The position numbers were made by a program, and so were the translations under genes. A DNA stretch of 32,187 nt from Macrostomum hystrix (Eukaryota > Animalia > Platyhelminthes), in the NCBI GenBank assembly GCA_950097015.1, contig CATNEN010000016.1:1-32187 (forward strand), written 5' to 3'. Below, piece by piece: positions 1-25,191 of this stretch; position 1 is the stretch's first letter; each line of letters starts with the position of its first letter. The notes beneath the pieces were generated by a model. It saw nothing but the letters and a program-made list of their open reading frames with translations. It had not been told where the DNA came from and did not search any database.

Positions 1-781
1 TAGCTAAACCAGAGTTTGAATCGTGGCTAAACCAGAGTTTAATCATGGCTAAACCAGAGTTTGAATCATGGCTAAACCAGAGTTTGAATCGTGGCTAAAC
101 CAGAGTTTTTAATCATGGCTAAACCAGAGTTTGAATCATAGCTAAACCAGAGTCTGAATCATGGCTAAACCAGAGTTTGAATCATGGCTAAACCAGAGTT
201 TGAATCATGGCTAAACCAGAGTTTGAATCGTGGCTAAACCAGAGTTTTAATCATGGCTAAACCAGAGTTTGAATCGTGGCTAAACCAGAGTTTGAATCAT
301 GGCTAAACCGGAGTTTGAATCATGGCTAAACCAGAGTTTGAATCATAGCTAAACCAGAGTCTGAATCATGGCTAAACCAGAGTTTGAATCATGGCTAAAC
401 CAGAGCTTGAATCATGGCAAACCAGAGTTTGAATCATGGCTAACCAGAGTTTGAATCATGGTTAAACCAGAGTCTGAATCATGGCTAAACCAGAGTTTGA
501 ATCATTGCTAAACCAGAGTTTGAATCATGGCTAAACCAGAGTTTGAATCATGGCTAAACCAGAGTTTGAATCATGGCCAACCAGAGTTTGAATCATGGCT
601 AAACCAGCGTTTGAATCATGGCTTACCCAGAGTTTGAATCATGGCAAAATCAGAGATTGAATCATGGCTAAACCAGATTTTGAATCATGGCTAAACCAGA
701 ATTTCAATCGTGGCTAAAACAGAGTTTGAATCATTGCTAAACCAGAGTTTGAATCATAGGAAAACCAGGGTGTGAATCATA
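1..781. repeat. 23-bp tandem array (GCTAAACCAGAGTTTGAATCATG)n
   Basis: Period 23 read directly (ATCATGG at 181 and 204). Confidence 0.97.
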
Positions 782-913
782 GCAATTTTTTTTGCCATTG
801 ATGAATTCTCATATAACGTCATAATGATATACATTTGTATGAAAATAATTTTGTCTGATATTCAACTAATGTTGTTCTTCTCAATTTTCTACAATAGCAG
901 CTAATAAAAAATT

Positions 914-3769
914 CAACTGGGGAACATTGTCAACTGGGGAGTCTTCATAAAATAGGGGATCATGGTAGACTGCGGGATAATCGTCAACTGGGGGATCATT
1001 GTCAACTGTGGGATTATTGTAAACTGGGGGGATCATCATCAAATGGGGGTTCATTGTCAACTGGGGGAACATTGTCAACTTGGGGATCATTGTCAACTAG
1101 GGGATCATTGTCAACTGGGTAATCATCATCAACTGGGTGATCATCATTTACTGGGGGATCATTGTCAAATGGGGGAACATTTATTGACTGGGGATCATTG
1201 TCAACTGGGGGATCATTGTCAACTGGGCGATCATTGTCAACTGGGGGATCATTGTCAACTGGGGGATCATCATCAACTGGGGATCATTGTCAGCTGGGGA
1301 ATCATTGTCGACTGGGAATCATTGTCAACTGGGGGATCATTGTCAACTGTCGACTGTGGGAAATAAATGTACACAACCAACCGCGAGACTGAGTGTACTC
1401 TATTTTCTTACTTCATTGTACAAAGCCAGAACTTTGAGAATTCATTTTATAAGGCTGATTTTTGCACCCACTAACCAACAGTCGGAATAGCCGATGTGTA
1501 GGCACTAGGAATAGGTTAGGCTAGGCTAGGGTTCGATTCTGCACTGCGTCAAATCATTTAGACTAATTTTCAGCCAGTAGTGATTGAAGACTATTTTAAT
1601 TTATTTTTTTCATTTCGTAAATAAAATATTGCTTGGTTGGTTGGTTGTAATTGATTTTCATCATTTACTGGGGGATCATTGTCAACTGGGGGAACATTTA
1701 TTGGCTGGGGATCATTGTCAACTGGGGGATCATTGTCAACTGGGCGATCATTGTCAACTGGGGGATCATTGTCAACTGGGGGATCATCATCAACTGGGGA
1801 TCATTGTCAGCTGGGGAATCATTGTCGACTGGGGAATCATTGTCAACTGGGGGATCATTGTCAACTGGGGGATCATCATCAACTGGGTATCATTGTCAAC
1901 TGGGGGATCATTGTCGACTGTGGGATCATTGTCAACTGGGTATCATTGTCAGCTGGGGGATCATTGTCAATTGGGGGAACATTGTCAACTGGGGATCTTC
2001 ATCAATGGGGAGTCATCATCAACTGGGAGATCATTGTCAACTTGGGGATCATTGTCAACTGGGGGATCATTGTCAACTGGGTAATCATCATCAACTGGGT
2101 GATCATCATTTACTGGGGATCATTGTCAACTGGGGGAACATTTATTGACTGGGGATCATTGTCAACTGGGCGATCATTGTCAACTGGGGGATCATTGTCA
2201 ACTGGGGGATCATCATCAACTGGGGATCATTGTCAACTGGAGTAACATTGTCAACTGGGGATCTTCATCAATGGGGAGTCATCACCAACTGGGGGATCAT
2301 TGTCAACTGGGTGATCATCATCAATTGGGGGATCATTGTCAACTGGGGAATCATTGTAAACTGGGGGATCATTGTCAACTGGGGGATCATTGTCAACTGG
2401 GGGATCATCATCACCTGGGGTATCATTGTCAACTGGGGGATCATTGTCGACTGTGGGATCATTGTCAACTGGGTATCATTGTAAACTGGGGGATCATTGT
2501 CAACTGGGGATCATTGTCAACTGGGGGAACATTGTCAACTTGTTGTCATCATCAATGGGGAGTCATCATCAACTGGGGGATCATTGTCAACTGGGTGATC
2601 ATCATCAATTGGGGGATCATTGTCAACTGGGGAATCATTGTCGACTGTGGGATCATTGTCAACTGGGTATCATTGTAAACTGGGGGATCATTGTCAACTG
2701 GGGATCATTGTCAACTGGAGTAACATTGTCAACTGGGGATCTTCATCAATGGGGAGTCATCACCAACTGGGGGATCATTGTCAACTGGGTGATCATCATC
2801 AATTGGGGGATCATTGTCAACTGGGGAATCATTGTCGACTGGGGAATCATTGTCAACTGGGGGATCATTGTCAACTGGGGGATCATTGTAAACTGGGGGA
2901 TCATCATCAACTGGGGTATCATTGTCAACTGGGGGATCATTGTCGACTGTGGGATCATTGTCAACTGGGTATCATTGTAAACTGGGGGATCATTGTCAAC
3001 TGGGGATCATTGTCAACTGGGGGAACATTGTCAACTTGTTGTCATCATCAATGGGGAGTCATCATCAACTGGGGGATCATTGTGAACTGGGGATCTTTGT
3101 CAACTGGGGAATCATTGTCGACTGTGGGATCATTGTCAACTGGGTATCATTGTAAACTGGGGGATCTTTGTCAACTGGGGATCATTGTCAACTGGAGTAA
3201 CATTGTCAACTGGGGATCTTCATCAATGGGGAGTCATCACCAACTGGGGGATCATTGTCAACTGGGTGATCATCATCAATTGGGGGATCATTGTCAACTG
3301 GGGAATCATTGTCGACTGGGGAATCATTGTCAACTGGGGGATCATTGTCAACTGGGGGATCATTGTAAACTGGGGGATCATCATCAACTGGGGTATCATT
3401 GTCAACTGGGGATCATTGTCGACTGTGGGATCATTGTCAACTGGGTAGCATTGTCAGCTGGGGATCTTCATCAATGGGGAGTCATCACCAACTGGGGGAT
3501 CATTGTCAACTGGGTGATCATCATCAATTGGGGGATCATTGTCAACTGGGGAATCATTGTCACATGGGGGATCATTGTCAACTGGGGGATCATTGTCAAC
3601 TGTGGGATCATTGTAAACTGGGGGATCATTGTCAACTGGGGATCATTGTCAACTGGGGGTCATCATCAATGGGGAGTCATCATCAACTGGGGGATCATTG
3701 TCAACTGGGGAATCATTGTCGACTGCGGGATCATTGCTAACTGGGGGATCATTGTCAACTGGGGGATCA
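914..3769. repeat. 18-bp tandem array (GGGGGATCATTGTCAACT)n, interrupted at 1360-1658
   Basis: Direct periodicity; source of the spurious GDHCQL/WGIIVN ORFs. Confidence 0.97.
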
Positions 3770-4253
3770 ATGTAGAATTAAAAAGCTGTAAATTCAGCTG
3801 CTTAAAGGTATATAATAGACGAATTAAAAATATTTCTGCTCCCCGAAGGGGGGCAAAACTTGCTAGTATATACTAAAAATGAAATGGTTGCTTGGTTGCT
3901 TGTAATTGATTTTCTCCCGAACGGCTCAACCGATTTTCACCATTTCTTCACCAAAATATGCCAAATATGGGCAGAATTTTACACGTATTTTTAATATGCT
4001 TAACTTCATTGTTAAGGGGATTAAATATTCGAAAAACTGTTTTAGATAGGATTTTTAATGCATTTCATCAGAGCCAGTTTTGTCAACGTGCATTCCACTG
4101 CCAATTTTATTGATTGCATCAGGGCCAGTTTTGTTAATAGTGAGTACACTGATAAGAATTTCACTGTGTCAAATGTACATAGCTATGTCAACCCCACTGA
4201 CGAGACAGTCAGTACGAATTTATAAATAGATTACATCACAGCTTTTCTCACCC

Positions 4254-4271
4254 GTGTGTGTGTGTGTGTGT
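4254..4271. repeat. (GT)n microsatellite
   Basis: GTGTGTGTGTGTGTGTGT seen directly. Confidence 0.9.
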
Positions 4272-4394
4272 TTGATTTGAATAGGTAAAATGTGCATAGC
4301 AGACTTCAATTCAACGATATATTGAGACATCTACTCCTTTCTTACTACAACATATAAATCATCAAATCTTTAACAAAATTTCAATCGAGAAAAG

Positions 4395-6745
4395 TGTCCA
4401 ACAGTTTTTTAAATGTCCAACAGTTTTTTAAATGTCCTACAGTTTTCTACATGTGTTTACCAGTATTCTAAACGTGTTTACCAGTATTCTAAAAGTGTTT
4501 ACCAGTTTTCTACATGTGTTTACCAGTATTCTAAAAGTGTTCACCAGTATTCTAAAAGTGTTTACCAGTATTCTAAATGTGTTTACCAGTATTCTAAAAG
4601 TGTTTACCAGTATTCTTAAAGTGTTTACCAGTATTCTAAAAGTGTTTACCAGTATTCTAAATGTGTTTACCAGTATTCTAAAAGTGTTTACCAGTATTCT
4701 AAAAGTGTTTACCTTTTTAGTTTTTTAAATGTCCAACTTTTTTTTTAATTGTCCTACAGTTTTCTACATGTGTTTACCAGTATTCTAAATGTGTTTACCA
4801 GTATTTTAAATGTGTTTACCAGTATTCTAAAAGTGTTTACCAGTTTTCTAAATGTGTTTACCAGTATTCTAAATGTGTTTACCAGTATTCTAAATGTGTT
4901 TACCAGTATTCTAAATGTGTTTACCAGTATTCTAAAAGTGTTTACCAGTATTCTAAATGTGTTTACCAGTATTTTAAATGTGTTTACCAGTATTCTAAAT
5001 GTGTTTACCAGTATTCTAAATGTGTTTACCAGTATTCTAAATGTGTTTACCAGTATTCTAAAAGTGTTTACCAGTATTCTAAATGTGTTTACCAGTATTT
5101 TAAATGTGTTTACCAGTATTCTAAATGTGTTTACCAGTATTCTAAATGTGTTTACCAGTATTCTAAATGTTTTTACCAGTAGTCTAAATGTGTTTACCAG
5201 TATTCTAAAAGTGTTAACCAGTTTTCTAAATGTGTTTACCAGTATTCTAAATGTGTTTACCAGTATTCTAAATGTGTTTACCAGTATTCTAAATGTGTTT
5301 ACCAGTATTCTAAAGTGTTTACCAGTATTCTAAATGTGTTTACCAGTATTCTAAAAGTGTTTACCAGTATTCTAAATGTTTTTACCAGTAGTCTAAATGT
5401 GTTTACCAGTATTATAAATGTGTTTACCAGTTTTCTAATTGAGTTTACCAGTTTCTAAATGTGTTTACCTGTTTTCAAAATGTGTTTACCAGTATTTTAA
5501 ATGTGTTTAACATTTTTCTAAAAGTCTTCAACTGTTTTCTAAAAGTGTTTAACCGTTTTCTAAATGTATTTATCAGTTTTCTAAATGTATTTATCAGTTT
5601 TCAAAATGTGTTTACCAGTATTCTAAATGTGTTTAACATTTTTCTAAAAGTCTTCAACTGTTTTCTAAAAGTGTTTACCTGTTTTCAAAATGTGTTTACC
5701 TGTTTTCAAAATGCGTTTACCAGTATTTTAAATGTGTTTAACATTTTTCTAAAAGTCTTCAACTGTTTTCTAAAAGTGTTTAACCGTTTTCTAAATGTAT
5801 TTATCAGTTTTCTAAATGTATTTATCAGTATTCTAAATGTGTTTACCAGTATTCTTAATGTGTTTAACATTTTTCTAAAAGTCTTCAACTGTTTTCTAAA
5901 AGTGTTTAACCGTTTTCTAAATGTATTTATCAGTTTTCTAAATATATTTATCAGTTTTCAAAATGTGTTTACCAGTTATTCTAAATGTGTTTAACATTTT
6001 TCTAAATGTGTTTACCAGTTTTCTAAATGTGTTTATCAGTTTTCTAAATGTGTTTACCAGTTTTCTAAATGTGTTTATCAGTTTTCTAAATGTGTTTACG
6101 AGTATTCTAAATGTGTTTAACAGTTTTCTAAATGTCTTTAACAGTTTTGTAAATGTGTCCAACAGTTTTTAATGTGTTTACATAGTTTTCTAAATGTGTT
6201 TACCAGTATTATAAATGTGTTTAACAGTTTTTAAATGTGTCCAACAGTTTTCTAAAAGTGTTTAACCGTTTTCTAAATGTGTTTAACAGCTTTCTAAATG
6301 TGTCTAAAAGTTTTTTTAATGTGTTTATAGGTTTCTAAATGTGTTCAACAGTTTTCGCAATGTGTTTAACATTTTTCTAAATGTGTTTACCTGTTTTCTA
6401 AATGCGTTTTCCAGTGTTCTAAATATGTTTAACAGTTTTCTAAATCCGTTTTCCAGTATTCTAAATGTTTTTTTCCAGAATTCTAAATGTGTTTATCAGT
6501 TTTCTAAACGTTTATATTAGTTTTCTAAATGTGTTTAACATTTGTCTAAAAGTGTTTAACTGTTTTCTAAATGTGTTTATCAGTTTTCTAAATGTGTTAA
6601 ATAGTTTTTTAAAGGTGTAAATCGTTTTTCAAAATGTTTCCAGTAGTTTTTTAATGTGTTTAATAATTTTCTAAATGATTTCAAGAGTTTTCTAAATGTG
6701 TCCAGTAATTACCGCTTTTCTAAATGCGTCTAAAAGTTTTTTAAT
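4395..6745. repeat. 21-bp tandem array (GTGTTTACCAGTATTCTAAAT)n
   Basis: Direct periodicity; homogeneous at ~4750-5400 and increasingly divergent toward 6745. Confidence 0.96.
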
Positions 6746-6767
6746 TCGTTTATTGGTTAAAAATGGT

Positions 6768-7345
6768 TATTTGCTGCTGGTGGGATTAGTTCTCTGCTGC
6801 AGGGGGGGGATTAGTTCTCTGCTGCAGGGGGGGAATTAGTTCTCTGCTGCTGGGGGGAATTAGGGGGGGAATTAGTTCTCTGCTGCTGAGGGGAATTAGG
6901 GGGGAATTAGTTCTCTGCTGCTGAGGGGAATTAGGGGGGAATTAGTTCTCTGCTGCTGAGGGGAATTAGGGGAGAATTAGTTCTCTGCTGCTGGGGGGGA
7001 ATTAGGGGGGAATTACTGCTGGGGGGAATTAGTTCTCTGCTGCTGAGGGGAATTAAGGGGGAATTAGCTCTCTGCTGCTGGGGAGAATTAGTTCTCTGCT
7101 GCTGGGGGGAATTAGGGGGAATTAGTTCTCTGCTGCTGGGGGGAATTAGTTCTCTGCTGCTGTGGGGAATTAGTTCTCTACTGCTGGGGGGAATTAGTTC
7201 TCTGCTGCTGGGGGGAATTAGGGGGGAATTAGTTCTCTGCTGCAGGGGGGAAATTAGTTCTCTGCTGCTGGGGGGAATTAGGGGGGAATTAGTTCTTTGC
7301 TGCAGGGGGGAAATTAGTTCTCTGCTGCTGAGGGGGGGGACATTC
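6768..7345. repeat. G-rich minisatellite (G5-7 AATTAGTTCTCTGCTGCTG)n with interspersed GGGGGGAATTA subunits
   Basis: Direct periodicity of about 24-36 bp. Confidence 0.95.
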
Positions 7346-8264
7346 GTTTTTATTGCTGAGGGGATAGTATTCACATGTACCCCAGTAGCATTAAGCTGAG
7401 TTGTATCAAACGGAAGTTACTTGGGTTATTTTTGCCCCAATGGGGCTCTTGGTGTACTGACCGAATGTCTCAGAATGTATTCAAGCTCAGCCTGACTATT
7501 TTTGTATTTAGTGAGAATTCTGATTCTCGTTGACTCGCAATAACGTATATTCGCAATCAGGGAAATTATGACTGACGAAATGAGTTTACGTTTTTGTTTG
7601 CTTTCAGGTGTTTTATCCTTCTGCATTGCACAAGATTTTTTTGTCTGACCAGTAGTGCTCCCCGAAGGGGGGCAAAACTTGCTAGTCTAATATACTAAAA
7701 ATGAACTGTTTACTTACTTGGTTGTAATTGATTTTCTCCCGAACGGCTCAACCGATTTTCACCATTTCTTCACCAAAAGATGCCAAATATGGGGACAATT
7801 TACACGTATTTTTATTAAGCCTAACTTTATTGCTAAAGGGATTAAATATTCGAAAAACATGATTTTTCAAAGGTCAAACCATCTTGGCCTATTGAGAATT
7901 TTACTCACTGCCGCTGAATTGGAATTGCATCGTCAAATTGCGCAACACCCCCTCGCTGACTGAGTTAGAAGCCTGCACTCTGGAGACAAATTTGAAATAA
8001 ATGTACACAACCAACCGCGAGACTGAGTGTACTCTATTTTCTCACTTCATTGTACAAAGCCAGAACTTTGAGAATTCATTTTATAAGGCTGATTTTTGCA
8101 CCCACCAACCAACAGTCGGAATAGCCGATGTGTAGGCACTAGGAATAGGTTATAGGCTAGGCTAGGGTTCGATTCTGCACTGCGTCAAATCATTTAGACT
8201 ACTTTTCAGCCAGTAGTGATTGAAGATTATTTTGATTTTTTTTTTCATTTCGTAAATAAAATAT

Positions 8265-8990
8265 CATAAATCATAGCAAACCTGAGTTTGAATCATGGCA
8301 AAAATAGAGCTTGAATCATGGCTAAACCAGCGTCTGAATCATGGCTAAACCAGAGTTTGAATCATGGCAAAAATAGAGCTTGAATCATGGCTAAACCAGA
8401 GTTTGAATCATGGCAAAACCAGAGTCTGAATCATGGCTAAACCAGAGTTTGAATCATGGCTAAACCAGGGTCTGAATCATGGCTAAAACAGAGTTTAAAT
8501 CATGGCTAAACCAGAGTCTGAATCATGGCTAAACCAGAGTTTGAATCATGGCTAAACCAGGGTCTGAATCATGGCTAAACCAGAGTCTGAATCATGGCTA
8601 AACCATAGTCTGAATCATGGCTAAACCAGAGTCTGAATCATGGCAAAACCAGAGTCTGAATCATGGCTAAAACAGAGTTTAAATCATAGCTAAACCAGCG
8701 TCTGAATCATGGCTAAACCAGCGTCTGAATCATGGCTAAACCAGAGTCTGAATCATGGCTAAACCAGCGTCTGAATCATGGCTAAACCAGCGTCTGAATC
8801 ATGGCTAAACCAGAGTCTGAATCATGGCTAAACCAGAGTCTGAATCATGGCTAAACCAGAGTCCGAATCATGGCTAAACCAGAGTTTGAATCATGGCTAA
8901 ACCAGAGTTTGCATCATGGCTAAACCAGAGTCTGAATCATGGCTAAACCAGAGTCTGAATCATGGCTAAACCAGCGTTTGAATCATGGCA
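8265..8990. repeat. 23-bp tandem array (same family as 1-781)
   Basis: GCTAAACCAGAGTCTGAATCATG units. Confidence 0.97.
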
Positions 8991-9135
8991 AAATTTTTCT
9001 TTTGTCATTGAATTGAATTTTGAGTTTGTTATCTCATAACGTCATAATGATATAATTTGTATGATAAATATTTTGCCTAATAATCATTTAATTGTTGTTC
9101 TTCTCAATTTTCTACAAAAGAAGCTAATATAAAAA

Positions 9136-10612
9136 TTAACTGGGCAACATTGTCAACTGGGCATCATCATCAATAAGGAGTCCTCATCAAATGGGGGATC
9201 ATTGTCAACTGGGGGATCATTGTCAACTGGGGGATCATTGTCAACTGGGTGATCATTGTCAACTGGGGGATCATTGTCAACTGGGGATCATTGTCAACTG
9301 GGGGATCATTGTCAACTGTGAGATCATTGTCAACTGGGGGATCATTGTCAACTGGGGGATCATTGTCAACTGGGTGATCATTGTCAACTGGGGATCATCA
9401 TCAACTGGGGGATCATTGTAAACTGGGGGATCATTGTCAACTGTGGGATCATTGTCAACTGGGGGATCATTGTCAACAAGGGGATCATTGTGAACTGGGG
9501 GATCATTGTCAACTGGGGATCATTGTCAACTGGGGGAACATTGTCAACTGGGGGATCATTGTCAACTGGGGGATCATTGTCAACTGGGTGATCATTGTCA
9601 ACTGGGGGATCATTGTCAACTGAGGGATCATTGTCAACTGGGGTATCATTATCAACTGGGGGATCATTGTCAACTTGGGAATGATTGTCAAATGGGTGTT
9701 CATTGTCAACTGGGGGATCATTGTCAACTGGGAGATCATTGTCAACTGGGGGATCATTGTCAACTGGGGGATCATTGTCAACTGGGGTATCATTATCAAC
9801 TGGGGGATCATCATCAACTGGGTGATCATTGTCAACTGGGGGATCATTGTCATCTGAGGGATCATTGTCAACTGGGGTATCATTATCAACTGGGGGATCA
9901 TTGTCAACTGGGGAATGATTGTCAAATGGGTGTTCATTGTCAACTGGGGATCATTGTCAACTGGGAGATCATTGTCAACTGGGGGATCATTGTCAACTGT
10001 GGGATCATTGTCAACTGGGGGATCATTGTCAACTGGGTGATCATTGTGAACTGGGGGATCATTGTCAACTGGGGATCATTGTCAACTGGGGGATCATTGT
10101 CAACTGGGGGATAATTGTCAACTGGGGGATCATTGTCAACTGTGAGATCATTGTCAACTGGGTGATCATTGTCAACTGGGGGATCATTGTCAACTGGGGG
10201 ATCATTGTAAACTGGGGGATCATTGTCAACTGTGAGATCATTGTCAACTGGGGGATCATTGTCAACTGGGGGATCATTGTCAACTGGGTGATCATTGTCA
10301 ACTGGGGGATCATCATCAACTGGGGGATCATTGTCAACTGTGGGATCATTGTCAACTGGGGGATCATTGTCAACAAGGGGATCATTGTGAACTGGGGGAT
10401 CATTGTCAACTGGGGATCATGTCAACTGGGGGTTCATTGTCAACTGGGGGATCATTGTCAACTGGGGGATCATCATCAACTGGGGGATCATTGTCAACTG
10501 GGGATCATTGTCAACTGGGGGTTCATTGTCAACTGGGGGATCATTGTCAACTGGGGGATCATCATCAACTGGGGGATCATTGTCAACTGGGGGATCATTG
10601 TCAACTGGGGGT
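9136..10612. repeat. 18-bp tandem array (same family as 914-3769)
   Basis: GGGGGATCATTGTCAACT units. Confidence 0.97.
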
Positions 10613-11586
10613 TTATTTTAGCTTTAAAAAGCTGTAAATTCAGCTGCTAAACAGTATATACAAGACGAATTAAAAATATTTCTGCTCCCCGAAGGGGGGC
10701 AAAACATGCTAGTCTTCTAGCTATAGATCTAATGAGTCGAAATGGCCTAATCTGCAATTAATTGTACGAAACTACACTCAAAAAATGTATCAATGTAATA
10801 ACACCTCAATGAAAATAGAATTTGTCTCTCTGATTCTTCTATTAATTCAACTTTAAAGATGATATGAATATGTGCATATATGTATTATATTCAAGTAATT
10901 GCACAACGTATATATTTTTCGTTTTTACGAGCGTAATAATGCGCCATACGTGTAATTTCACAATTACATAATCTCTATTTACACTTTCTCCATAATCATT
11001 TAACTTTAAACACAGTTTTTCAGTACTTATCTAATCCTTCTCAATAAAAGTGTCATAATTGCTTCAACATCAACGTGCAAAATCTAATTAGCTCCAGTCT
11101 GCAGCTTTGATCGACAGCTGCTCACAAAAATTATCTGCATATTATTGTATAAGGCTTAGTGGTTGAAGCAAAATTGTTTATTATAGCAAGCAATTATATC
11201 TAAACCCTAGTTAAATTTTGTGTGTTTTCAAGACCAATCGCAACTAATGATAGTTGTTTGTGCAGTAAGATTTAATTCAACGTGTTAAAGAAATCGCGCG
11301 TCACAATTAGCTTACAAAATGTACACAAATACATGTGCGGTTCCATTTTGACCTGAATTAAGAACATTCAAAGTGACGGAAATTTCGAGCGATAACTTTA
11401 CCAGCAGTAAAATATTAATTATGACCAATTTCGTGATTTTAATTTGCCCTGTCTGCTATGTTTATATCCGCCACAGACTTTACAAAGTTGACGCTGTGCC
11501 GAGAAGCTCGAGATTGTGCCAACTCGCCTGCTCAGCGGCTGATGATCCGATCTGCTGCGCTGGCGGTGTCACAGCTAAGAACTTCT

Positions 11587-11638: not shown

Positions 11639-12121
11639 TGGTGCCTCGGTGTCAGCGAAGCCTGTTGGCCCGGGCCCTGCCAGCTAGATATGGGAGGCCA
11701 CAGAGCAGATGCCGAGATCCGCTGAACTGCATGTGTGGGCCACCTTCAGCCTGACTAACCGCGACGGCGGTAGAGCACTGCAAGAAGCACACGCGGCTAT
11801 GATATGTCGAGATGAGGGAAGCTTGCAGTAATATTAAGTGGAGTCGGTAAACCCGCAAGGGCTGTTTCGCTTGGAAGTTGCTTAATTTGTGCAACTGAAT
11901 AAAGCTTGTGAAGTGCATGAATATGTATTTTCAATTCGTACGATAAATTTATATAGAATATAAAATCATGCACTACTGCAGGTGTATATAAACAGGATGC
12001 TTAGGTGCATGCTTTCATGGTTTAGTAAATTTCATGCGTTAACTCGACATAAATTTTAATGATTATTTATATGGTTATGGGTAACTGTTGTGGGTTTCGT
12101 TACGATAATTCCGTAAATAGT

Positions 12122-12222
12122 TTTCCAGAACTTTCTACCACTTGTTATAACACTCTGTTGTTTCCAGAATCTTCTCTGCGCCTCCCCCGCGGGCTATCTA
12201 TGAGAACTTTCTAGAAAGTTCT
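12122..12222 (+). promoter_or_regulatory. Three heat-shock elements in the 5' LTR
   Basis: tTTCcaGAActTTCt (12122-12136), tTTCcaGAAtcTTCt (12161-12175) and aGAActTTCtaGAAagTTCt (12203-12222). All are perfect alternating nGAAn arrays. Confidence 0.8.
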
Positions 12223-12239
12223 CCCACTCGCTCCCAGGC

Positions 12240-12247
12240 TATAAATA
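12240..12247 (+). promoter_or_regulatory. TATA box of the 5' LTR
   Basis: TATAAATA, 17 bp after the four-unit HSE. Confidence 0.8.
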
Positions 12248-12425
12248 GAAACCCCCGCGCGGTGCACACACTCAAAAACTTTCCAGTATTTAATAATACT
12301 GCTGTTACAAATATACGCTTATCCAGTCGACTGCCGAGTGCTCCTTTCGGCGCTATACTTACATTTACCAACACTACAATTGGAATCTCTGTATTCGTTA
12401 CTTCAAGAATACAACAGGGATTTTC

Positions 12426-12443
12426 TGGCGTCGCAAGCAGGAT
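12426..12443 (+). promoter_or_regulatory. Primer-binding site, probably tRNA-Ser type
   Basis: TGGCGTCGCAAGCAGGAT, 9 nt after the LTR. Its complement ...ATCCTGCTTGCGACG-CCA has the form of a tRNA 3' end with a G discriminator, as in tRNA-Ser. Confidence 0.7.
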
Positions 12444-12515
12444 CTTGATCAACTTCGAGGACGTCTAATCTACAACGACTGTCACTATTGACCGAAGGAT
12501 CAAGCTACTACAATC

Positions 12516-13454
12516 ATGCCCGAAACGATGCAAGACGAGGATATAATCAGCCTCCTACGGCAGCAGATGGAAGAAGAGCGCCAACAGCGGAACGCTGACC
12601 GGCAGATGATGCTCGACCTCATTCGGTCTCTAAAGCCTGCAGCGGACCAGTCCAGGCTGCAGCTTTGCCGACACATGTGACGACGTCGACTCCGGGTTTC
12701 TCGCCATTCGACGCCACGTCCGAGCTCTGGCCCGACTACTTGGCCAGATTCTGCACCTTCACGGGCGCGAACTCCATACCCGACGACAAGAAGGCTCAGG
12801 TGTTCCTGACGAACCAGTCTCCGTCTGTCTACAAGCTTCTCTCAAACTTGGCAGCGCAGCAGACGCCGCGGAAGGAGATCAACAAGCTCACTATGGACGA
12901 GATTGAGAAGTTCATGGAAGAACAGTATGACACCAAGCGCTTCATCGTGCGGGAGCGTTTCCGGTTCTGGAGCGACATGCGGCGGAAACCGGTGAGACGA
13001 TCCAGGAAATGGCTGCGAGAATCCGCCAGGATGCAACCACCTGCGATTTCTCTTCCATCAAAGATCCACTGGACGAGGCGCTGCGCACGCGTTTCATCTG
13101 CTCAGTGAGGAACGAAGCAGTACTCAAAGCTTTGTTCAAATTAAAGGTGGAAGAGCTCACGTTCGCCCGGGCTGTCGAGATCGCCATCGAGACAGAGGAA
13201 GCCGCCCGAGTCGCCAAGGAGACGGTTTACGGCGACAAATCCAGCCCGTAAACAAGGTTAAGCAGAAGGTTCGGCGACCCGGAGCCACTTCGGCGAAATT
13301 TACGACAGATTCTACTGCTTCCAGGTCTACTACTGACTCTGCGTCTGGTTCGTGCTACCGCTGCGGAGCGAAGAACCATCGGGCAAACGATTGCCGATTC
13401 AAAGACGCGACCTGCCGGCACTGCAAAAAGGTGGGTCACCTAGAATCTGTCTGC
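12516..13454 (+). CDS. gag: Gag (capsid-like region plus two CCHC zinc knuckles); frameshifted in this assembly
   Basis: Starts MPETMQDED; contains PFDATSELWPDYLARF and LRTRFICSVRNEAV. Knuckles CYRCGAKNHRANDC and CRHCKKVGHLESVC at 13353-13454. Confidence 0.9.
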
Positions 13455-16400
13455 CGTTCCAAGGCAAAGGATCTGCCCCTGCGGCGAACTTCAAGAAGCC
13501 AGTGAAACAGGTCGAGGAGCATGTGCTTGTACATGCTGTAGCCCGAACCGAGGACGACCTGCCTAAGCTGGAAGTGTCGATCCACATCCAAGGCAAGGCT
13601 CTCGCCATCGAGGTCGACACTGCGACAAACGGCAACTTCATCACAGAGTCATTCTGGAAGAAGCTGGGGACGCCGCCGCTCGAAGTAGCGATGTCACGCT
13701 ACGAGTCCGCCAGCCGACACGACTTACCTGTACTAGGTACCTTCGTCGGGAAAACGACATTGCCTGGCTCAGCTCCTGAGCACGACATCCAGTACATCGT
13801 CACACAGGTGCCCGGCTTGAATCTACTCGGCCGGACCGCCACGAAGCTGTTGGGAATCTCCGTCGACAAACTGCTCGGCGCTGCCAGCGCCATTCAAGAA
13901 GTCAACGCAGTGTTTGACCACCTGCCGCCGGACGAGGCTCTTCAAAAGGCCTGCCGAAATCTTTGCGACGAATTCCCGGACCTGTGGAAGGACGAGCTGG
14001 GTTGCCTCAAGGACTTCAAGCTCGAGTTGCAGTTTAACCCGGATGCAAAGCCGGTGTTCCGGAAGGCTAGGCCTGTCCCCTTCGCCATCCGCGAGGAGCT
14101 CGAGCGCGCCTACGACGAGGGCATCAGGAGAGGCATCTGGGAGCCTACTGACTTCAATGACTACGGGACGCCCGTGGTCCCCGTGCGAAAGCCCTCGACC
14201 GGCTCAGAGCAGCCGAAACTGCGAGTCTGCGGAGACTACTCGTGCACTATCAACCCGCAGCTGGAAGACAACCGTCACCCGCTGCCCCTCCCAGAGGAAC
14301 TGCTACAGAAGCTGGGAGGCAGCTACTGCTTCTCAAAGGTAGATCTGGCCGACGCCTACAACCAGATCGAGTTGGGACCGATGAGTCAGAGGCGCCTGGC
14401 ACTGAGCACCACCGGGGTGTGCTTCTTCAGAAGCGGCTCGCTTTCGGCCCGAAGTCTGCAGTGGGTGAGTTCCAGTTCATCATGGAAATGGTAGCCGGTG
14501 ATCTGCCCGGAGTCGTTTTCTACTTGGACGACTACCTGGTCGGCGGCGCGACCGCTGATGAGCATCTCGCAAACCTACGCCGGCTTTTCCAACGCCTTTC
14601 TGACAAGGGAGTTCGCTGCCGGACGGGAGAAGTGCAAATTCGCCATGCCCAGCATCGAGTACCTTGGCTATGTACTGTCAAAAGAAGGCATCGCCAAGGG
14701 AACCAAGGTGGACGCTGTCCGCGAAAGGCCTCCACCAAAGGACGTGTCCAGCCTCCGGTCATTCCTCGGCTCGGTCCAGTTCTACGCGAAGTTTCTGCCG
14801 CCAAGCATGGCCACGATCTCCGAGCCGCTGTACCGGCTCACCAGGAGGGACACACCGTGGACCTGGAAAGACGCAGAGCAGCGGGCCTTCGACCAGATCA
14901 AGGAGGAGCTCTCGTCGGAACAACGTGCTGGTCCACTACAATGCCGACCTCCCTCTCGGGCTCTCCTGCGACGCATCCAACGTCGGGATCGGCGCCGTCC
15001 TGTTCCACCGCTACCCGGATGGTAGCGAGCGGCCGATCGCCAACGCTTCAAAGTCTCTGACGGATGCTCAGCGCCGCTATCCTCAGATTCAGAAGGAAGC
15101 CCTTTCAATCATCTTCGGCCTAAGAAGTTTTTCCAATACTTGTTCAACCGCAAGTTCATCCTGGTCACGGACCATAAGCCGTTGATTTCTCTATTCGGGC
15201 CCGAGAAGGAGACACCAGTGATGGCGGCAAACCGGCTGGCACGGTGGGCTAACCTGCTCCACAACTTCACCTACGAAGTCGAGTACCGCCAGACCAAGAG
15301 TCACGGAAACGCGGATGCCCTGAGTCGCCTGCCAATGGGAGACGACCCAGATTTCGACGGGGAGGAGAGCACAGCCGACTTCGACATGGTCTGTGCGATC
15401 AAGGTCCTAAGCTTGCAAATCCAGCCGGCTGACGCCTCAGCCGTGGCCAAAGAATCATCGAGGGACCCGGTGATCTCCACCGTCATGCGCTACTGTCGAG
15501 AAGGATGGCCACCAGACAGGCGAGACGAAGACGCCGAGGTGGCCCGCTTACGGAAGGTCAAGATTCGCTCTCCTGCTGCAACGGATGTCTTCTGCAGGGC
15601 TGTCGTCTTGTGATTCCTCAAAACCTTCGGAAGGAGGTGCTGAAGATTCTCCACCTCGGACACTTTGGAATGCAGAGGATGAAGCAGCTGGCTCGATCGG
15701 CAGTCTACTGGCCGAACATCGACGACGACGTCGAGCACCTGTGCCGCGGCTGCCATAGCTGCGCTGAGCACCAAAATCATCCGCCAAGGCCGCCGTTCAT
15801 CCGTGGATGATGCCTGAGAAGCCTTGGAGTCGCCTACATCTGGATCACGCAGTCAACTTCCTCGGCACCAACTGGCTAGTGCTCACGGACGCCTACTCGA
15901 AGTACCCGTGCATACCCCCGACGCAATCCATGTCAACGCGGGCAACGATCGAGCTTCTGGAAGAAGACTTCGCCCACTTCGGCTACCCTCACGCCATCGT
16001 CACTGACAATGCAGCGGCATTCATGGCTGAGGAGTTTCAAGCTTGGTGTCGCGAACACGGCATCGCGCACCTCACAGGAGCTCCGTATCATCCTGCAACA
16101 AACGGAGCGGCCGAACGACTGGTTCAGACCTTCAAGAAGGCCCTGAAGAAATCCAGCCTGCCACCTGCCAGGGCGCTACAGCAGTTCCTGATGCAGTACC
16201 GACGGACTCCTGCGATCAACGGCTACTCTCCGAGCGAACTCCTAAATGGCCGGCAGATCAGGACGCAGATTGATACTCTGCTGCCATCTCCAGCCCATCT
16301 CGCCCAGGATCGCCAAGTCAAGCAGGCCGAAGAGTCCAGAGCTCGGAAAAAGGTGTCTCGCGTCCGAGAAGGCTACAACGTTGGAGATCCGGTCTACGCT

Positions 16401-16773
16401 CGCTACTACGGACCACACCGCGAGAAGGAAGGCCGCTGGGTTCCGGCAGTGGTCACCAAGCGGCACGGCAAGCCGCAGCGTCAACGTCAAGGTTGTCCCA
16501 AGCGGCCCGGTGTGGCGACGGCACTTCGACCAGCTTCAACCGCGACACGTGTCCGCGGAAGACAGCGAGCCAGGATCACTGCCGACTCAACAAAACGAAA
16601 CGGCCGGCCACCTGATGCTGCCGGCCACACCAGCGGTGGCACATCCAGGATCTCGACCCAGGCCTCCAGGATGGCGAGCGCCGGACCAAGTCCAACACCC
16701 GCCGCCCTACGGACCAGATAATCCACGACGGTCGGCTAGGCAGCGAAAGCCACGGCTACAAATGGACTTATAG
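13455..16773 (+). CDS. pol: Pol (aspartic protease, reverse transcriptase, RNase H, integrase); several 1-nt frameshifts
   Basis: Protease EVDTA; RT LRVCGDY, KVDLADAY, YLDD; RNase H CDASNVGIGAVL, QIQKEAL, TDHKPL; integrase HLGHFG/CxxC, HLDHA, VTDN, PYHPATNGAAER. No env or chromodomain seen. Confidence 0.95.
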
Positions 16774-16800
16774 ACTTTCTATCAGCTGTACTCACAGTTT

Positions 16801-16811
16801 TGGTGGGGAGG
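16801..16811 (+). promoter_or_regulatory. Polypurine tract
   Basis: TGGTGGGGAGG directly before the 3' LTR. Confidence 0.8.
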
Positions 16812-17143
16812 TGTTGTGGGTTTCGTTACGATAATTCCGTAAATAGTTTTCCAGAACTTTCTACCACTTGTTATAACACTCTGTTGTTTCCAGAATCTTC
16901 TCTGCGCCTCCCCCGCGGGCTATCTATGAGAACTTTCTAGAAAGTTCTCCCACTCGCTCCCCAGGCTATAAATAGAAACCCCCGCGCGGTGCACACACTC
17001 AAAAACTTTCCAGTATTTAATAATACTGCTGTTACAAATATACGCTTATCCAGTCGACTGCCGAGTGCTCCTTTCGGCGCTATACTTACATTTACCAACA
17101 CTACAATTGGAATCTCTGTATTCGTTACTTCAAGAATACAACA
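16812..17143 (+). repeat. 3' LTR (332 bp)
   Basis: Copy of 12086-12416, followed by TSD GTAAC. Confidence 0.98.
16848..16974 (+). promoter_or_regulatory. Heat-shock element cluster and TATA box in the 3' LTR
   Basis: HSEs at 16848-16862, 16887-16901 and 16929-16948; TATAAATA at 16967-16974. Confidence 0.78.
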
Positions 17144-17660
17144 GTAACTATATTGGGTAATTTTTATAGCTAATATAGTGGCTGCTATATCGATGAAATT
17201 GAAACACAAAGTATAAAAGTGTATCTAATTTGTAATATACATTTATATGTATGTACAAGCATTGTATTTTACTTTCACGAAGGGACTTCAGTAAAGTAAA
17301 AAAGTCATGATTACAATAAGTTTAAAAGAGTTTCATTACTTGGTTAAATTTTTATATGGCTATTTTCAGCTTAATTATTTTTTTTAATTACATGAAGCTT
17401 GATAATCATACTTAATAAGCTGGGTATTTTATATGTCATTGTGCTGATCATCGTAAATCACGAGGCTTGGCAAAGAAACATTAAAGTTTTTACGACTACA
17501 CATTTGCCGTCCATGTTTGTTTCCCCTTGCAAACAAAGAGTAAGTTGTCTGATGCTAATAAGATCGAGATTCTGTTTTGCTCTAGAACTGAGTTGCAGGC
17601 TGACAGTCTATTAGATTCTTTTCTGCACGTTCACATTATTAACGTTGATCTGGTGTGGAA

Positions 17661-17712
17661 ATGACATCTGCTTTGACTGGAACTAAGAAACGTGTTTGCT
17701 ACTATTATGATG
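17661..17712 (+). CDS. HDAC1: Class I histone deacetylase, coding exon 1
   Basis: MTSALTGTKKRVCYYYD-G matches the HDAC1/2 N-terminus. Phase-1 donor G|GTAAGT matches the exon 2 acceptor, giving G-DIG. Confidence 0.88.
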
Positions 17713-19432
17713 GTAAGTCGAATTTTTAGACCAGATTATGATATTACCACTTGTTTGTAGTACACTGCTAGTTGTGTCTATTAAAATGTATCATATTTTA
17801 ATTATCTTTATCGCTCAGAATCTTGCAATCAATACCGATTAGCATTAGCTTTATCCATACCATAGACATAGTCAGTAATATCCCTTTGCTTGGAAAATTC
17901 CAGCGCAGAATGGGTTAGAACAGGCACCAACTCAGAGCCCTAACAAAAGGTAGAAAAGAGCTAGCTATTCATATTTACTTATTTCTCTTTCAGACTTTCA
18001 ACTTAAGTGTAAATAGACAAGCCTAACATAGTTAGGATCCTGTCTTATGTGAAAGAATTCAACATTCATTTTGGAGTCCCTTTCCTTTAGGATGGCTTTA
18101 TTATCTGGCTGCGTTTTTGCAATCCCTTAATCGTAATGTGGTCCAAAAAGTGGAAACTGATTTCAGAAATTGCATTATATATCTCTTTGCTAGGGAAAGA
18201 AAGTCCCTTATTTTTGGCTAACAAGTTTTTCTAGTCTAGTTTTCCATGCCAGCATGTGAAAGACCCAAAAACGTTTAGGTCTGCCTATGATTTGGGCTGG
18301 TGGGTAGGGCTGGCTCTGACTTCATGTAGCTCTAGATGAATGAGGGGGTAGGTATAAAATATACATTAGTGTAAGGATGATTTGTGCACGCAAGTTGTGC
18401 ATATCAAGCCTGTTGTCCCTATCACCCTCTGTCACCCATTGATTCTAAACATAGGGGCAAGGAAAGGTTTGACACAAATAAAAAAACTAGGCCCCTAAGT
18501 GTTTTACTTGCCTGACAGAAAAAAACTACAATTCTTTCTTTAATTAACAGCTAGTTCTAATCTTGGGCATTGACTATAAAATACAATGGTATCAACATAG
18601 GCCTAACCATAGAAATAGCACAACAGACATAAGGCAATTTTGCATTGACAAAGAACTTTTTTAGAGATAAATGGAAAGGCACAGTGCTTTATCTGCATAG
18701 GAACTGTCACTGTTTTCAAGAATGCTTATATCTGCCTTCATTTGGATTCTGCACAAGGCATCAAGGTATATAACAATAGACACTGTTGCTTGCCAGAATG
18801 TAGCAATAAAAACCATAGTTTTGTAAAATTCAGCTATAATTATCTGTATATTTAGATAAAGTAACAATAACTACTATTATTTAAATAGCCAAGCAACATT
18901 TTTTACAATTGCCATAAGCTGGTGCATGCATTAAGAATACTTTATTGACTATAGTACTTATTAAATTAATATTTATACTAAAATGTTTGTTAGCCAAGTT
19001 GTATCCATAATAAGTGGTATCAAAAATAGCAAATATTTAAGCTAGTGAACAAAATATTTATGAAAGGTAAAGAAAATTGCGTGATGAAATTTAGTGTAGT
19101 GGTATACCAATGGACCCCTTTCAAACTTCGACATTTAATATTTAGTTACCTTTAACATAGTAGTATATAGTAATATAACAAATACTACTACAAATACTAA
19201 AGGTACATACAACTACAATACATTTTTTCTTCTTGCAATGGGTAAACTTGGTCTGAGTAGTAAAAAAGCAACTTTAGTGTCCTCTGGGGGCACAGGCAGA
19301 ATTTTAGGATTCATACAATCCCCTAATGCAAATTACACTTGTCCTCTCAATCAGCTAATACTCCCCTCCCTGTTGGCCCCAAACATATCACCTCTTGGCT
19401 GGCAACCTAGGCAGACAAAAACCTACTCTCTC

Positions 19433-19850
19433 CAGCAGCAGAAAACTAATGTCCCCCAGGAGCAGAGAACCAATGTCCCCCAGCAGCAAATAAACAATGT
19501 CCCTTAATAGCAGAGAACCAATTAAGTGTCCCCCTAGCAGCAGAGAACTAATGTCCCCCCAGCAGCAGAGAACTAATGTCCCCTAAGCAGCAAATAACCA
19601 ATGTCCCCCCAGCAACAAAGAACCAATGTCGCCAAACAGAAGAGAACCTCCATAATACCAGGCTACCAAACCCCCCACAAGAAATTGGTAGCCCCCCACA
19701 CAAAACTTTCTCCCCTTGACAGCAAACCATTGCCCCCATATAGCAGAGAAATTATGATTTTAGTCAGCCCTGCAAATATCTCCCAGCAGTTAACCAGTAA
19801 CCCCTTTAGCAGAGAAAATATCCTATTTTAGCAGAAAAATGTTTTTCCAA
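19433..19850. repeat. Minisatellite (CAGCAGCAGAGAACTAATGTCCCCC)n, degenerating 3', in HDAC intron 1
   Basis: Direct periodicity; reverse complement of the 6768-7345 core. Confidence 0.85.
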
Positions 19851-19954
19851 TAACATATTTCAGAATTTAATTAAAAAATACAAAGCACTAAAAATCAGTA
19901 AGCCAAGGACAGTTGAGAAGGATTTACACAAATTACTACGCAAGGATGTCGACC

Positions 19955-20195
19955 AATGTCCCTCAGCAGGTAATGAATGTCCCTCAGCAGGTAATGAATG
20001 TCCCTCAGCAGGTAATGAATGTCCCTCAGCAGGTAATGAATGTCCCTCAGCAGGTAATGAATGTCCCTCAGCAGGTAATGAATGTCCCTCAGCAGGTAAT
20101 GAATGTCCCTCAGCAGGTAATGAATGTCCCTCAGCAGGTAATGAATGTCCCTCAGCAGGTAATGAATGTCCCTAAGCAGGCAGACAATGTCTCTC
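19955..20195. repeat. Perfect 21-bp array (AATGTCCCTCAGCAGGTAATG)n
   Basis: About 10-11 near-identical copies. Confidence 0.97.
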
Positions 20196-20333
20196 TTTAG
20201 CAAAGAACTAATGACACATTTAGCATGTAACCTGCTAAATGTTGGCTTTATTGCAAAAACGTGGCTATGTCTGCAGGTGATTGAATGTTAAGTCCCAAGG
20301 AATTCATGGAACTTTAGTTCCCTTTGATTAAAA

Positions 20334-20414
20334 CCTGAGATTCGAACTCCCGACCATGTAAGAGTTGTATTCAAAGTCCAAAGCTCTAACTACTCGTACT
20401 CGGCCACTGGACTA
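20334..20414 (-). pseudogene. tRNA-derived sequence (tRNA-Gln-TTG-like pseudogene or SINE head)
   Basis: Minus strand shows TGGCCGAGT (A-box-like), TTGGA-CT-TTG-AA-TACAA (anticodon arm, one mismatch) and GAGTTCGAATCTC (B box / T arm). The acceptor stem is not intact. Confidence 0.45.
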
Positions 20415-20531
20415 ATCTACACACGGATTAATACCTTTAGAGAGCTCAAAAGTAATGATATACTTTAATTGCTTATTTAAATGTAAAAATCGGATTAACA
20501 AGGTTGAAATCAAACCCATTTGAAACGCCAG

Positions 20532-21396
20532 GCGACATCGGCAAACTACTACTACGGGCAGGGCCACCCGATGAAGCCGCACCGCATAAGAATGACACAC
20601 AACCTGCTGCTGAACTACGGCCTGTACCGCAAGATGAGATCTACCGGCCGCACAAGGCCACGGCCGAGGAGATGACGCGCTTCCACAGCGACGACTACAT
20701 CAAGTTCCTGCGCTCCATCCGGCTGACAACATGCACGAGTTCAACAAGCAGATGCAGCGCTTCAACGTTGGCGAGGACTGTCCCGTGTTCGACGGCCTGT
20801 ACGAGTTCTGCCAGCTCAGCACCGGCGGCTCCATCGCCGGGCCGTCAAGCTAAACAAGTGTGCCACCGACATCGCCATTAACTGGGGCGGCGGCCTCCAT
20901 CACGCCAAAAGTCCGAGGCCTCCGGCTTCTGCTACGTCAACGACATTGTGCTGGCCATTCTCGAGCTGCTCAAGTACCATCAGCGGGTGCTGTACGTTGA
21001 CATCGACATTCACCACGGCGACGGCGTCGAGGAAGCCTTCTACACCACCGACCGCGTCATGACCGTCTCGTTCCACAAGTACGGCGAGTACTTTCCCGGC
21101 ACCGGCGACCTCAAGGACATTGGCGCCGCCGCGGCAAGCACTACGCCGTCAACTTCCCGCTCAGGGACGGCATTGATGACGACGCCTTCGAGCAGATCTT
21201 CGCTCCCGTCATCACCAAGGTCATGGAGCACTACCGGCCCTCCGCCATCGTCCTGCAGTGCGGCGCCGACTCTCTGGCTGGCGACCGTCTCGGCTGCTTC
21301 AACCTATCGCTGAAGGGCCACGGCCGCTGCGTCCAGTTCATGAAGAAGTTTGACACCCCCCTGCTTCTGCTGGGTGGGCGGTGGCTACACGATCAG
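20532..21396 (+). CDS. HDAC1: Class I histone deacetylase, exon 2 (about seven 1-nt indels)
   Basis: CCAG|[76 protein letters not shown]|GT. Confidence 0.96.
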
Positions 21397-21430
21397 GTGG
21401 GTCCGGGCTGTGGGTGGCTTCTGCTGGCTA

Positions 21431-21640
21431 GAATGCAGCATCAGGCAGCTGGGCAGCATCAGGCAGCTGGGCAGCTGGGGATGGAGCATCAGGCAGCTGG
21501 GGATGCAGCATCAGGTAGTTGGGGATGCAGCATCAGGCAGTTGGGGATGCAGCATCAGGCAGCTGGGGATGCAGCATCAGGCAGCTGGGGATGCAGCATC
21601 AGGCAGCTGGGGATGCAGCATCAGGCAGCTGGGGATACAG
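21431..21640. repeat. 22-bp array (GCAGCATCAGGCAGCTGGGGAT)n filling HDAC intron 2
   Basis: Period 22 (21549, 21571, 21593). Confidence 0.93.
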
Positions 21641-21680
21641 CCTTATGCAGATGGGGATTCAACGAATCCCGCCTCCGCAG

Positions 21681-21910
21681 GAACGTGGCCCGCTGCTGGA
21701 CCTACGAGACGGCCATCGCTCTGGGCCAGGAGATCCCAAACGAGCTGCCCTACAATGACTACTTCGAGTACTTCGGACCGGACTTCAAGCTGCACATCCA
21801 GCCGTCGAACATGTCCAACCAGAACACCCCGGAGTACCTGGAGAAGATCAAGACTCGCCTGCTGGAGAACCTGCGAATGCTGCCCAACTCACCTGGAGTT
21901 CAGATGCAAG
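21681..21910 (+). CDS. HDAC1: Class I histone deacetylase, exon 3
   Basis: CCGCAG|[40 protein letters not shown]...PGVQMQ|GTGAG. Confidence 0.96.
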
Positions 21911-22084
21911 GTGAGCTCTGGCTTCTGTGCTCAAATCCCACCTGCTTTAGATCCCACCCACTGCACCATCCTAATCTGTGTCATACAAATACATACAACT
22001 CATAAAAATCCACACAGTCTCATACGAATCCCATAGAGTCTCACAGATCCCATATCAGAGAATTCTCAACTCCAACACCCGCAG

Positions 22085-22395
22085 ACATCCCGGAGGACGG
22101 CATGGTGGTGGACGCGGACGTGGCGCAGGAGGAGGCGGAGCAGGACCGCGGCAAGCGGGACGAGCAGCGGGTGAGCATTCGCTCGTCTGACAAGCGCGTC
22201 TCCGGCGACAACGAGCTCAGCGACAGCGAGGACGAGGCCGGCGACGGCCGGCGCGACGTCAGGTCGCACAAGCGGCAGAAGCGGGACAGCCGCGGCGAGT
22301 CGGCCGCCAAGCCCGAAGGCGTCGCCAAGAACGGCGACGGTGCCGGCAAGGCTGACTCAGCAACCAAGGGGGACAGCGAGGCGAAGACGGATTGA
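22085..22395 (+). CDS. HDAC1: Class I histone deacetylase, last exon (charged C-terminal tail)
   Basis: CCGCAG|AC IPED...RVSIRSSDKR...ELSDSEDE, ending in TGA. IPED and SDSEDE match the HDAC1/2 tail. Confidence 0.93.
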
Positions 22396-22875
22396 AGGAA
22401 TCGTCTGTGGACTCTTCTCTCGGCAGCTTTACTAATTTAATCCCGTGCACCCATTGAGGAGAAACCGCAGCTGAAGGATCCCAATTCTGATTCAGTTCAA
22501 GATCCAATCGCATAGAGATGTCACCCTGGCTCTTTTAAAATCAAACTATGCTACTCTTGATCTGTTTAGGCGCATATTCTCCGTAGTAGCCTACTCACTT
22601 GGTTTCTTCTAGTAAGTAGTATAATTGGCATATCGCATTGTTTTTTATTTGTTGTTAAATACGACTTTAATGAGTGTTTTTATTAAATATTCAGGGCTAG
22701 TTCGGTTAAAATCTAATTCGTTGTATTTTATGAGTTTATCGGAAGTCTAATTTATCTTTTCGTCTTGCATAGTGTTGTTGAAATCGTTACACACTTGCTA
22801 GCTTGTACTTTTATTCTCTCAGTTTCTAAAAAAATACATTTCTCTACTGCTTTTTTAATGCTTGCAGTCAAAACA

Positions 22876-22881
22876 AATAAA
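22876..22881 (+). terminator. Candidate polyadenylation signal of the HDAC gene
   Basis: AATAAA about 480 nt after the stop codon; position only. Confidence 0.4.
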
Positions 22882-23294
22882 ATATTGCGCATCCAACACT
22901 TTATTGTCCCACGCCGTTGCTACTAATTAGCTGAAAACCGTTAAGTTGTTTCTCATTTCTCATTGATGTCTCATACGAGCGTACAAATCCATAAAATATT
23001 ATGCAGGTCTTTAGTTAACAGATTTGGTAAATTTCAAACTTTTGAAACATATTAGGTAAATTCTAGACTTTAAGTACGACAGAAGCAAATAGGAACTCCA
23101 CTTTGTTATCAAGGTCATTGGAGCATTACTGACTTAGCGACAAAACTGGAGGGACAGAGATCGAGAAGCACCCATAATCTCTGCTGTAGTCTATGCGTCT
23201 ACTGATTAAAACAAAATTCTGTCTTTTTGCAAAAAAAATTTACCTGCTCTGCAACTATTTTTCGTCAAGATAGTTGGAAGGAACGTTAAAAACA

Positions 23295-25042: not shown

Positions 25043-25191
25043 ATGGCGTCGAATCCCAGCAGAACAAGTGGCGGCGGAAAATCACAGCCGAAGCCGAAGC
25101 AGCCAAAGCCACAACCTCAGCAGCAGCAGCAGCAGCAAGAGCAGGAGTTAGATCCTGAACAGGCGCGACTGCAACTGCTGGATGCGTACAG
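25043..25191 (+). CDS. Ankyrin-repeat TRPM-like channel, exon 1 (polyQ-containing N-terminus)
   Basis: MASNPSRT...QQQQQQQ...LLDAY AG|GTACTG; phase 2 matches the acceptor at 25467. The start codon is inferred. Confidence 0.7.

Follow-up and report, generated by a model that had tools for sequence, protein, structure and literature searches.

Introduction

Heat-responsive retrotransposons of the kind considered here are best documented in the flatworm Macrostomum lignano. [quoted passage not shown] In the same study, four HSE-bearing LTR families were upregulated more than 250-fold at 37 °C, with induction starting within 5–15 min, and mutation of the HSEs in the three-HSE Mag LTR abolished induction of the reporter (PMC12801592). 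Two HSE-bearing Copia families, each with one HSE, are described there as not induced (PMC12801592), so that one HSE alone is no guarantee of a response. According to that study, most Macrostomum LTR families belong to Mag (PMC12801592). It also cites Helitron1_CE of C. elegans, whose HSEs make the transposon and nearby genes responsive to HSF-1 (cited in PMC12801592).

Here, we analyzed a 32,187-nucleotide stretch of DNA from Macrostomum hystrix (the window), in which an initial annotation had described a Gypsy-type element whose LTR resembles an hsp70 promoter and had inferred it to be young and heat-inducible. An assembly of about 220 Mb in 42 contigs has been published for M. hystrix (PMC10468722), and our genome searches covered 220,453,370 bases on 42 contigs.

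Results

The window contains an LTR retrotransposon of 5.06 kb (12086–17143, + strand), flanked by the target-site duplication GTAAC, which is found at 12081–12085 on the 5′ side and is repeated after the 3′ LTR at 17144–17148. The 5′ LTR spans 331 bp (12086–12416, TGTTG...ACAACA), exactly as initially delimited, and the 3′ LTR spans 332 bp (16812–17143), the sole difference between the two being one C in a C-run. A 19-nt primer-binding site (PBS), TGGCGTCGCAAGCAGGATC, lies 9 nt beyond the 5′ LTR (12426–12444), and the polypurine tract GGTGGGGAGG (16802–16811) abuts the 3′ LTR. The gag-pol coding region (12517–16773) comprises a zinc knuckle, a protease-like segment, RT, RNase H and integrase, and its frame is interrupted in this copy. 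In relatives of the element, the PBS occurs at the same offset, and a GGTGGGGAGG-type polypurine motif is present as well (L068, L070 and L078).

Pfam analysis of an uninterrupted copy placed zf-CCHC at residue 280, RVT_1 at residues 596–721, RT_RNaseH at 785–919, Integrase_H2C2 at 1035–1089 and rve at 1123–1195, together with a weak protease match (Asp_protease_2, E 0.003); neither a chromodomain nor env was found in the gag-pol frame of that copy. The succession of zinc knuckle, RT, RNase H and integrase is that of Ty3/Gypsy elements, in agreement with the original Gypsy-type assignment. The best named pol relatives are "K02A2.6-like" proteins, and these matches, along with the single gag-pol frame that lacks a chromodomain and env, probably place the element in the Mag clade.

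The complement of the PBS, with CCA, corresponds to the 3′ end of host tRNA-like loci, nine of which end in TTCG[AG]ATCCTGCTTGCGACG. A tRNA-like locus on contig C1 (L099:1498–1591; G000:C1:10205271–10205364, minus strand) encodes the CCA and matches the PBS of the element. ARAGORN calls this locus a tRNA-Gln(CTG) of 94 nt. Its 3′ half (variable arm, T arm and acceptor) has what we take to be a resemblance to tRNA-Ser, its 5′ half is not tRNA-like, and the locus had no match in Rfam; it may be a retro-copied tRNA fragment.

The window copy contains stops in every reading frame. Against the allelic copy on contig C31, which has the same duplication and flanks, it shows 0 substitutions; the two differ by 12 gaps of a single base, each within a homopolymer. 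Because only homopolymer gaps separate it from the C31 allele, its frame breaks resemble errors in the assembly of a small duplicate contig that was poorly polished, rather than decay. A degenerate, non-autonomous window copy was also considered and was rejected given the 0 substitutions relative to the C31 allele and the open frames of most other copies.

The window contig itself (C16, 1–32187) duplicates the 2.884–2.891 Mb region of C31 (L031, L096). In the unique flank the two contigs differ by 26 substitutions in 1,501 bases (97% identical), against 0 substitutions in the 5-kb element inside it. Gene conversion could lie behind this diverged flank beside an identical element, as could a haplotig that is chimeric or was poorly polished.

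Upstream of the predicted transcription start, the U3 of both LTRs contains the canonical HSE, read as nGAAnnTTCnnGAAn or as the complement of that sequence. Read directly from the 5′ LTR, HSE 1 (12122–12136, tTTCcaGAActTTCt) and HSE 2 (12161–12175, tTTCcaGAAtcTTCt) are perfect 3-unit arrays, and HSE 3 (12203–12222, aGAActTTCtaGAAagTTCt) is a perfect 4-unit array within an exact 22-bp palindrome (12202–12223); none of the three is assigned to a strand. The array starts are 39 and 42 bp apart, and the TATA box TATAAATA (12240–12247, + strand) stands 17 nt past the last unit of HSE 3. From the usual TATA distance of 25–30 nt, transcription is predicted to start at 12270–12277 (+ strand), where R would begin. 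The arrangement in the 3′ LTR is the same, with HSEs at 16848–16862, 16887–16901 and 16929–16948 and a TATA box at 16967–16974 (+ strand), the one extra C in its C-run giving a gap of 18 nt. The initial annotation had read this promoter accurately, down to the HSE coordinates, the unit counts of 3, 3 and 4, the 22-bp palindrome, the array spacing of about 40 bp, the 17-bp distance to the TATA box and the repetition of the arrangement in the 3′ LTR.

Both the arrays and the TATA box are exact, far beyond what chance would give. In the 32-kb window, the 3-unit core was counted eight times where 0.5 occurrences were expected; every one of the eight falls within the two LTRs. Among 200,000 dinucleotide-preserving shuffles of the LTR, a check proposed in advance, one array appeared in 595, two appeared in 1 and three in 0. 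Chance origin of the arrays was rejected on the basis of these shuffles and window counts. We also considered STAT/GAS sites as the identity of the motifs. GAS sites have a 3-nt spacer, and since TTCCAGAA has a 2-nt spacer, which is the spacing of HSEs, this assignment was rejected.

Across the genome, we obtained 40 scored LTR matches (98–100% identity), 21 full-length RT-RH matches (94–100% identity) and about 24 LTR-PBS junctions, and the family comprises about two dozen copies that are nearly identical. We extracted 16 full-length copies; two pairs of them occupy the same site on duplicate contigs, leaving 14 insertion sites, each with its own 5-bp target duplication. The LTR pairs of family copies differ by 0–2 substitutions. 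An uninterrupted 1,420-codon gag-pol frame, counted from the ATG corresponding to 12517, is present in most sampled copies, and the remaining ones have a single stop or frameshift. The distinct duplications, near-identical LTR pairs and mostly open frames show that the family was very recently active, bearing out the description of the element as young. The HSE arrays and the TATA box are present in all 19 distinct LTR sequences sampled, HSE 3 being down to three units in one of them. With all copies 98–100% identical, this conservation is silent on selection, which is unreadable from the family because its members are nearly identical.

Host hsp70 genes provided a direct reference for the promoter layout. 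Four intronless hsp70 genes, two of them in a divergent head-to-head pair, are located on contig C33 (L080–L083; G000:C33:3867893–3873260, 4230542–4232353 and 4642505–4644316), and the encoded protein aligns with Macrostomum lignano Hsp70 along its entire length at 95% identity, its second-best full-length match being at 84%. Three of the genes share nearly identical upstream sequence over about 350 bp, and the fourth (L082) over about 230 bp. Each of the four promoters contains perfect 3-, 3- and 4-unit HSEs, the last of which ends 13 nt before TATAAAAG. Measured to the TATA box, the arrays of the LTR leave gaps of 103, 64 and 17 nt, compared with 162–165, 84 and 13 nt in three hsp70 genes and 196, 92 and 13 nt in the fourth, and the distance from the first HSE unit to the TATA start is 126 bp in the LTR versus about 180–211 bp in hsp70. 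The likeness to an hsp70 promoter that had been proposed for the LTR thus extends to the host's own genes, with the same 3/3/4 order before a TATA box at 13 nt versus 17 nt. The proximal arrays are in opposite phase, GAA-first in the LTR against TTC-first in hsp70, and blastn-short comparison of the LTR with the four hsp70 upstream regions returned only HSE-sized matches (≤16 nt, E 0.037 or worse). Because similarity was confined to HSE-sized matches and the proximal arrays are in opposite phase, the LTR is, judged by its sequence, a mimic of the hsp70 layout and not a captured piece of promoter.

The nearest other elements in the genome share only 35–47% RT-RH identity with the family. The initial annotation had suggested examining sister Mag LTRs for HSE conservation, and the outcome was negative: no 3-unit HSE was found in any of 12 other Mag-like families examined (LTRs of 234–454 bp), one of which has a single 2-unit site. 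The LTR pairs of these 12 families are 98–100% identical, so they are young too. Among the Mag-like families sampled in this genome, the HSEs are specific to the family described here. The genome holds at least 12 further Mag-like single-frame LTR families (for example L046–L067), which indicates that many families were recently active.

Searches with pol returned hundreds of proteins with 63–82% identity in RT-RH and 46–61% in gag-protease, named relatives including those from the snails Batillaria attramentaria and Littorina saxatilis. An entry tagged Em presumably derives from the sponge Ephydatia muelleri. None of the 120 best matches of either pol search was a protein named as M. lignano, and the M. 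hystrix family may represent a lineage separate from the M. lignano elements. Exact look-ups of the pol and hsp70 proteins yielded nothing, and a metagenome scan returned only 3 loci.

The LTR was readable in twelve relatives (set L068–L103). L070 has a six-unit HSE run with one imperfect unit, followed by TATAAATA; L077 has two 3-unit arrays and L102 two perfect arrays plus two dimers, in both cases upstream of a TATA box; and L101, from Littorina saxatilis, has one perfect array 15 nt before TATATAAG. Imperfect or 2-unit palindromic sites adjoin the TATA box in L069, L071 and L078, the site of the last (GAGctTTCtaGAAgcTTG, then ccaggcTATA) being visibly like the palindromic core of HSE 3. 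No HSE was found near the TATA box in L074, L075 or L076, and L068, the closest relative found (82% RT-RH identity), has neither an HSE nor a TATA box. Perfect arrays in four of the twelve relatives, against a chance expectation of about 0.3% per LTR, are far more than chance would produce.

In a pol tree with a sister family from the same genome as outgroup, these ten to fifteen elements group tightly as a single clade that is well separated from that sister family, and LTRs with perfect HSEs occupy at least four sub-branches of the clade. This recurrence of HSEs with a TATA box may reflect either an ancestral promoter with losses or repeated gains. The pol of the family is closer to elements from snails, a presumed sponge and many other assemblies (56–82% RT-RH identity) than to the nearest family in the same genome (47%), a contrast that suggests horizontal spread. 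We hold only tentatively, as a possible but doubtful extension, that these elements are a Mag sub-lineage shared across phyla by a flatworm, the intertidal snails Littorina and Batillaria and a sponge, whose ancestral, portable HSE-plus-TATA promoter could explain its spread between distant animals, presumably by horizontal transfer. Under that reading, the promoter would work in any new host, as HSF and the site it binds are found in all eukaryotes.

A search of sequencing runs found no run on record as RNA that contained the element. Run contigs included tiny, low-depth pieces of the element in X1 and X14, both guessed to be RNA, and covered the full element in X3 and X7, whose kind is not on record; none of these contigs came from a heat experiment. 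Seventeen runs guessed to be RNA and sharing the species label of X7 contained almost none of it, which fits low expression without stress and proves nothing. In run X3 (record 6), a 1,382-nt contig joins 16418–17005 to 12279–13064 and so runs from the 3′ end of the internal region across a single LTR into the beginning of that region on the 5′ side; it could come from collapse of the repeat graph, from tandem elements with a shared LTR or from a circle with one LTR.

The full HSE-TATA promoter of the 3′ LTR points outward, and a class I HDAC gene (HDAC1-like) on the same strand has its start codon (17661) 518 bp downstream of this LTR. Within window 17144–20700, exon 1 of this gene reads MTSALTGTKKRVCYYYDG, the next exon lies near 20560, and the first intron contains a 21-bp minisatellite (19913–20237). 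Heat-driven read-out from the 3′ LTR into the HDAC1-like gene is possible given this arrangement. Minisatellites are unusually dense in the window at 1–11000 and 19900–32000, with periods of 16, 18, 21, 22, 23, 26, 29 and 30 bp.

Discussion

We consider it likely that host HSF directly activates the LTR upon heat or proteotoxic stress, where HSF binding, heat induction and the start site are what we infer. The U3 region would act as an HSF promoter, with three sites for HSF trimers about four helical turns apart, the strongest of which would be the 4-unit HSE 17–18 nt before the TATA box. Under heat or proteotoxic stress, activated host HSF would bind the array, and transcription beginning near 12270 would run by way of R-U5 along the single gag-pol frame and yield the genomic RNA. 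Expression of the element would thus fall at the time of least control by the host.

The same promoter could serve an HSF paralogue that binds the HSEs for developmental or germline expression rather than under stress, with the new insertions then being inherited. In other animals, HSFs also act in gametogenesis, apart from any stress response. At least four or five HSF DNA-binding domains are encoded in the genome, more than the single HSF typical of many invertebrates, and the family has often reached the germline, with about two dozen fixed or segregating copies. We nevertheless consider this unlikely: the LTR layout corresponds to that of the host's stress-type promoters at the intronless hsp70 genes, the runs guessed to be RNA, from unstressed animals, are almost devoid of the element, and an analogous LTR reporter in M. 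lignano is described as heat-dependent and seemingly without expression in the gonads (PMC12801592). The chances appear slim, too, that the motifs are real but silent, with the family repressed by small RNAs or chromatin and the HSEs a neutral legacy of one master copy. Such a history would agree with near-identical copies from which selection on the HSEs is unreadable, and with a run search that yielded no element-bearing run on record as RNA. It is at odds with the very recent transposition, by which the promoter was in use, with the recurrence of HSEs beside a TATA box across at least four of the wider clade's sub-branches, which points to function, and with the twelve HSE-free sister families, which indicate that drift does not build such arrays in these LTRs.

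A different origin of the promoter, in which recombination or read-through brought part of a host heat-shock promoter into the LTR instead of HSEs being built up stepwise, would account for the 3+3+4 order shared with host hsp70 and the nearly equal distance from HSE to TATA. Capture of an hsp70 promoter was rejected, however, as similarity to the LTR does not go beyond the motifs. The matches to hsp70 are HSE-sized only (≤16 nt, E 0.037 or worse; the test covered the four hsp70 promoters), the proximal arrays have opposite phase, the spacings to the TATA box are 103/64/17 versus 165/84/13 nt, and relatives in other phyla already have HSEs at the same place, making capture very improbable. Direct activation by HSF under heat or proteotoxic stress is the reading that we prefer. 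The LTR reproduces the host hsp70 layout in the absence of sequence homology, a clear case of regulatory mimicry.

With about two dozen copies, the family has spread strong predicted heat-shock promoters around the genome, and the HDAC1-like neighbor offers a ready-made case in which to look for stress rewiring of a host gene. The recurrence of the HSE-TATA arrangement in snail and other relatives suggests that heat-responsive LTR promoters are possibly a lineage trait and not isolated accidents, which bears on warming or intertidal heat stress as a trigger of transposition bursts.

Compared with known systems, the LTR shares with the host hsp70 promoters the succession of 3, 3 and 4 perfect nGAAn units before a TATAAA box and differs in what is driven, a chaperone gene in the one case and gag-pol RNA in the other. 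The closest described element is Mlig-id115|Mag of M. lignano, which belongs to the same genus and probably the same clade, has about 20 copies and carries three canonical HSEs, with the predicted TATA box and start site downstream of them; its HSE form, nTTCnaGAAnnTTCc, is close to the nTTC[ct]aGAAnnTTCt of the M. hystrix LTR. The two differ in species, and in M. lignano both heat induction and HSE dependence have been shown experimentally. In its available text, the M. lignano study compares LTR schemes only with the Hsp20 promoter (PMC12801592), whereas the match to the hsp70 layout is shown here for M. hystrix. The initial annotation had pointed to ONSEN as the best-known case; ONSEN is indeed an HSE-bearing LTR element, and the closer precedent is the one described in M. 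lignano (PMC12801592). ONSEN (ATCOPIA78), found in Arabidopsis and other Brassicaceae, resembles the present family in its HSE-bearing LTR and is directly activated by heat-shock factors, with stress-linked transposition bursts; it is a Ty1/Copia rather than a Gypsy element, from another kingdom, and the resemblance is convergent, not by descent. Helitron1_CE, which with ONSEN makes up the validated cases outside M. lignano, differs in being a rolling-circle DNA transposon and not an LTR element. Heat-activated LTR elements with HSEs have thus already been described in the genus and the M. hystrix family apparently has not; what it adds is modest, namely a promoter laid out like those of the host hsp70 genes and an HSE-TATA arrangement that recurs across a cross-phylum clade.
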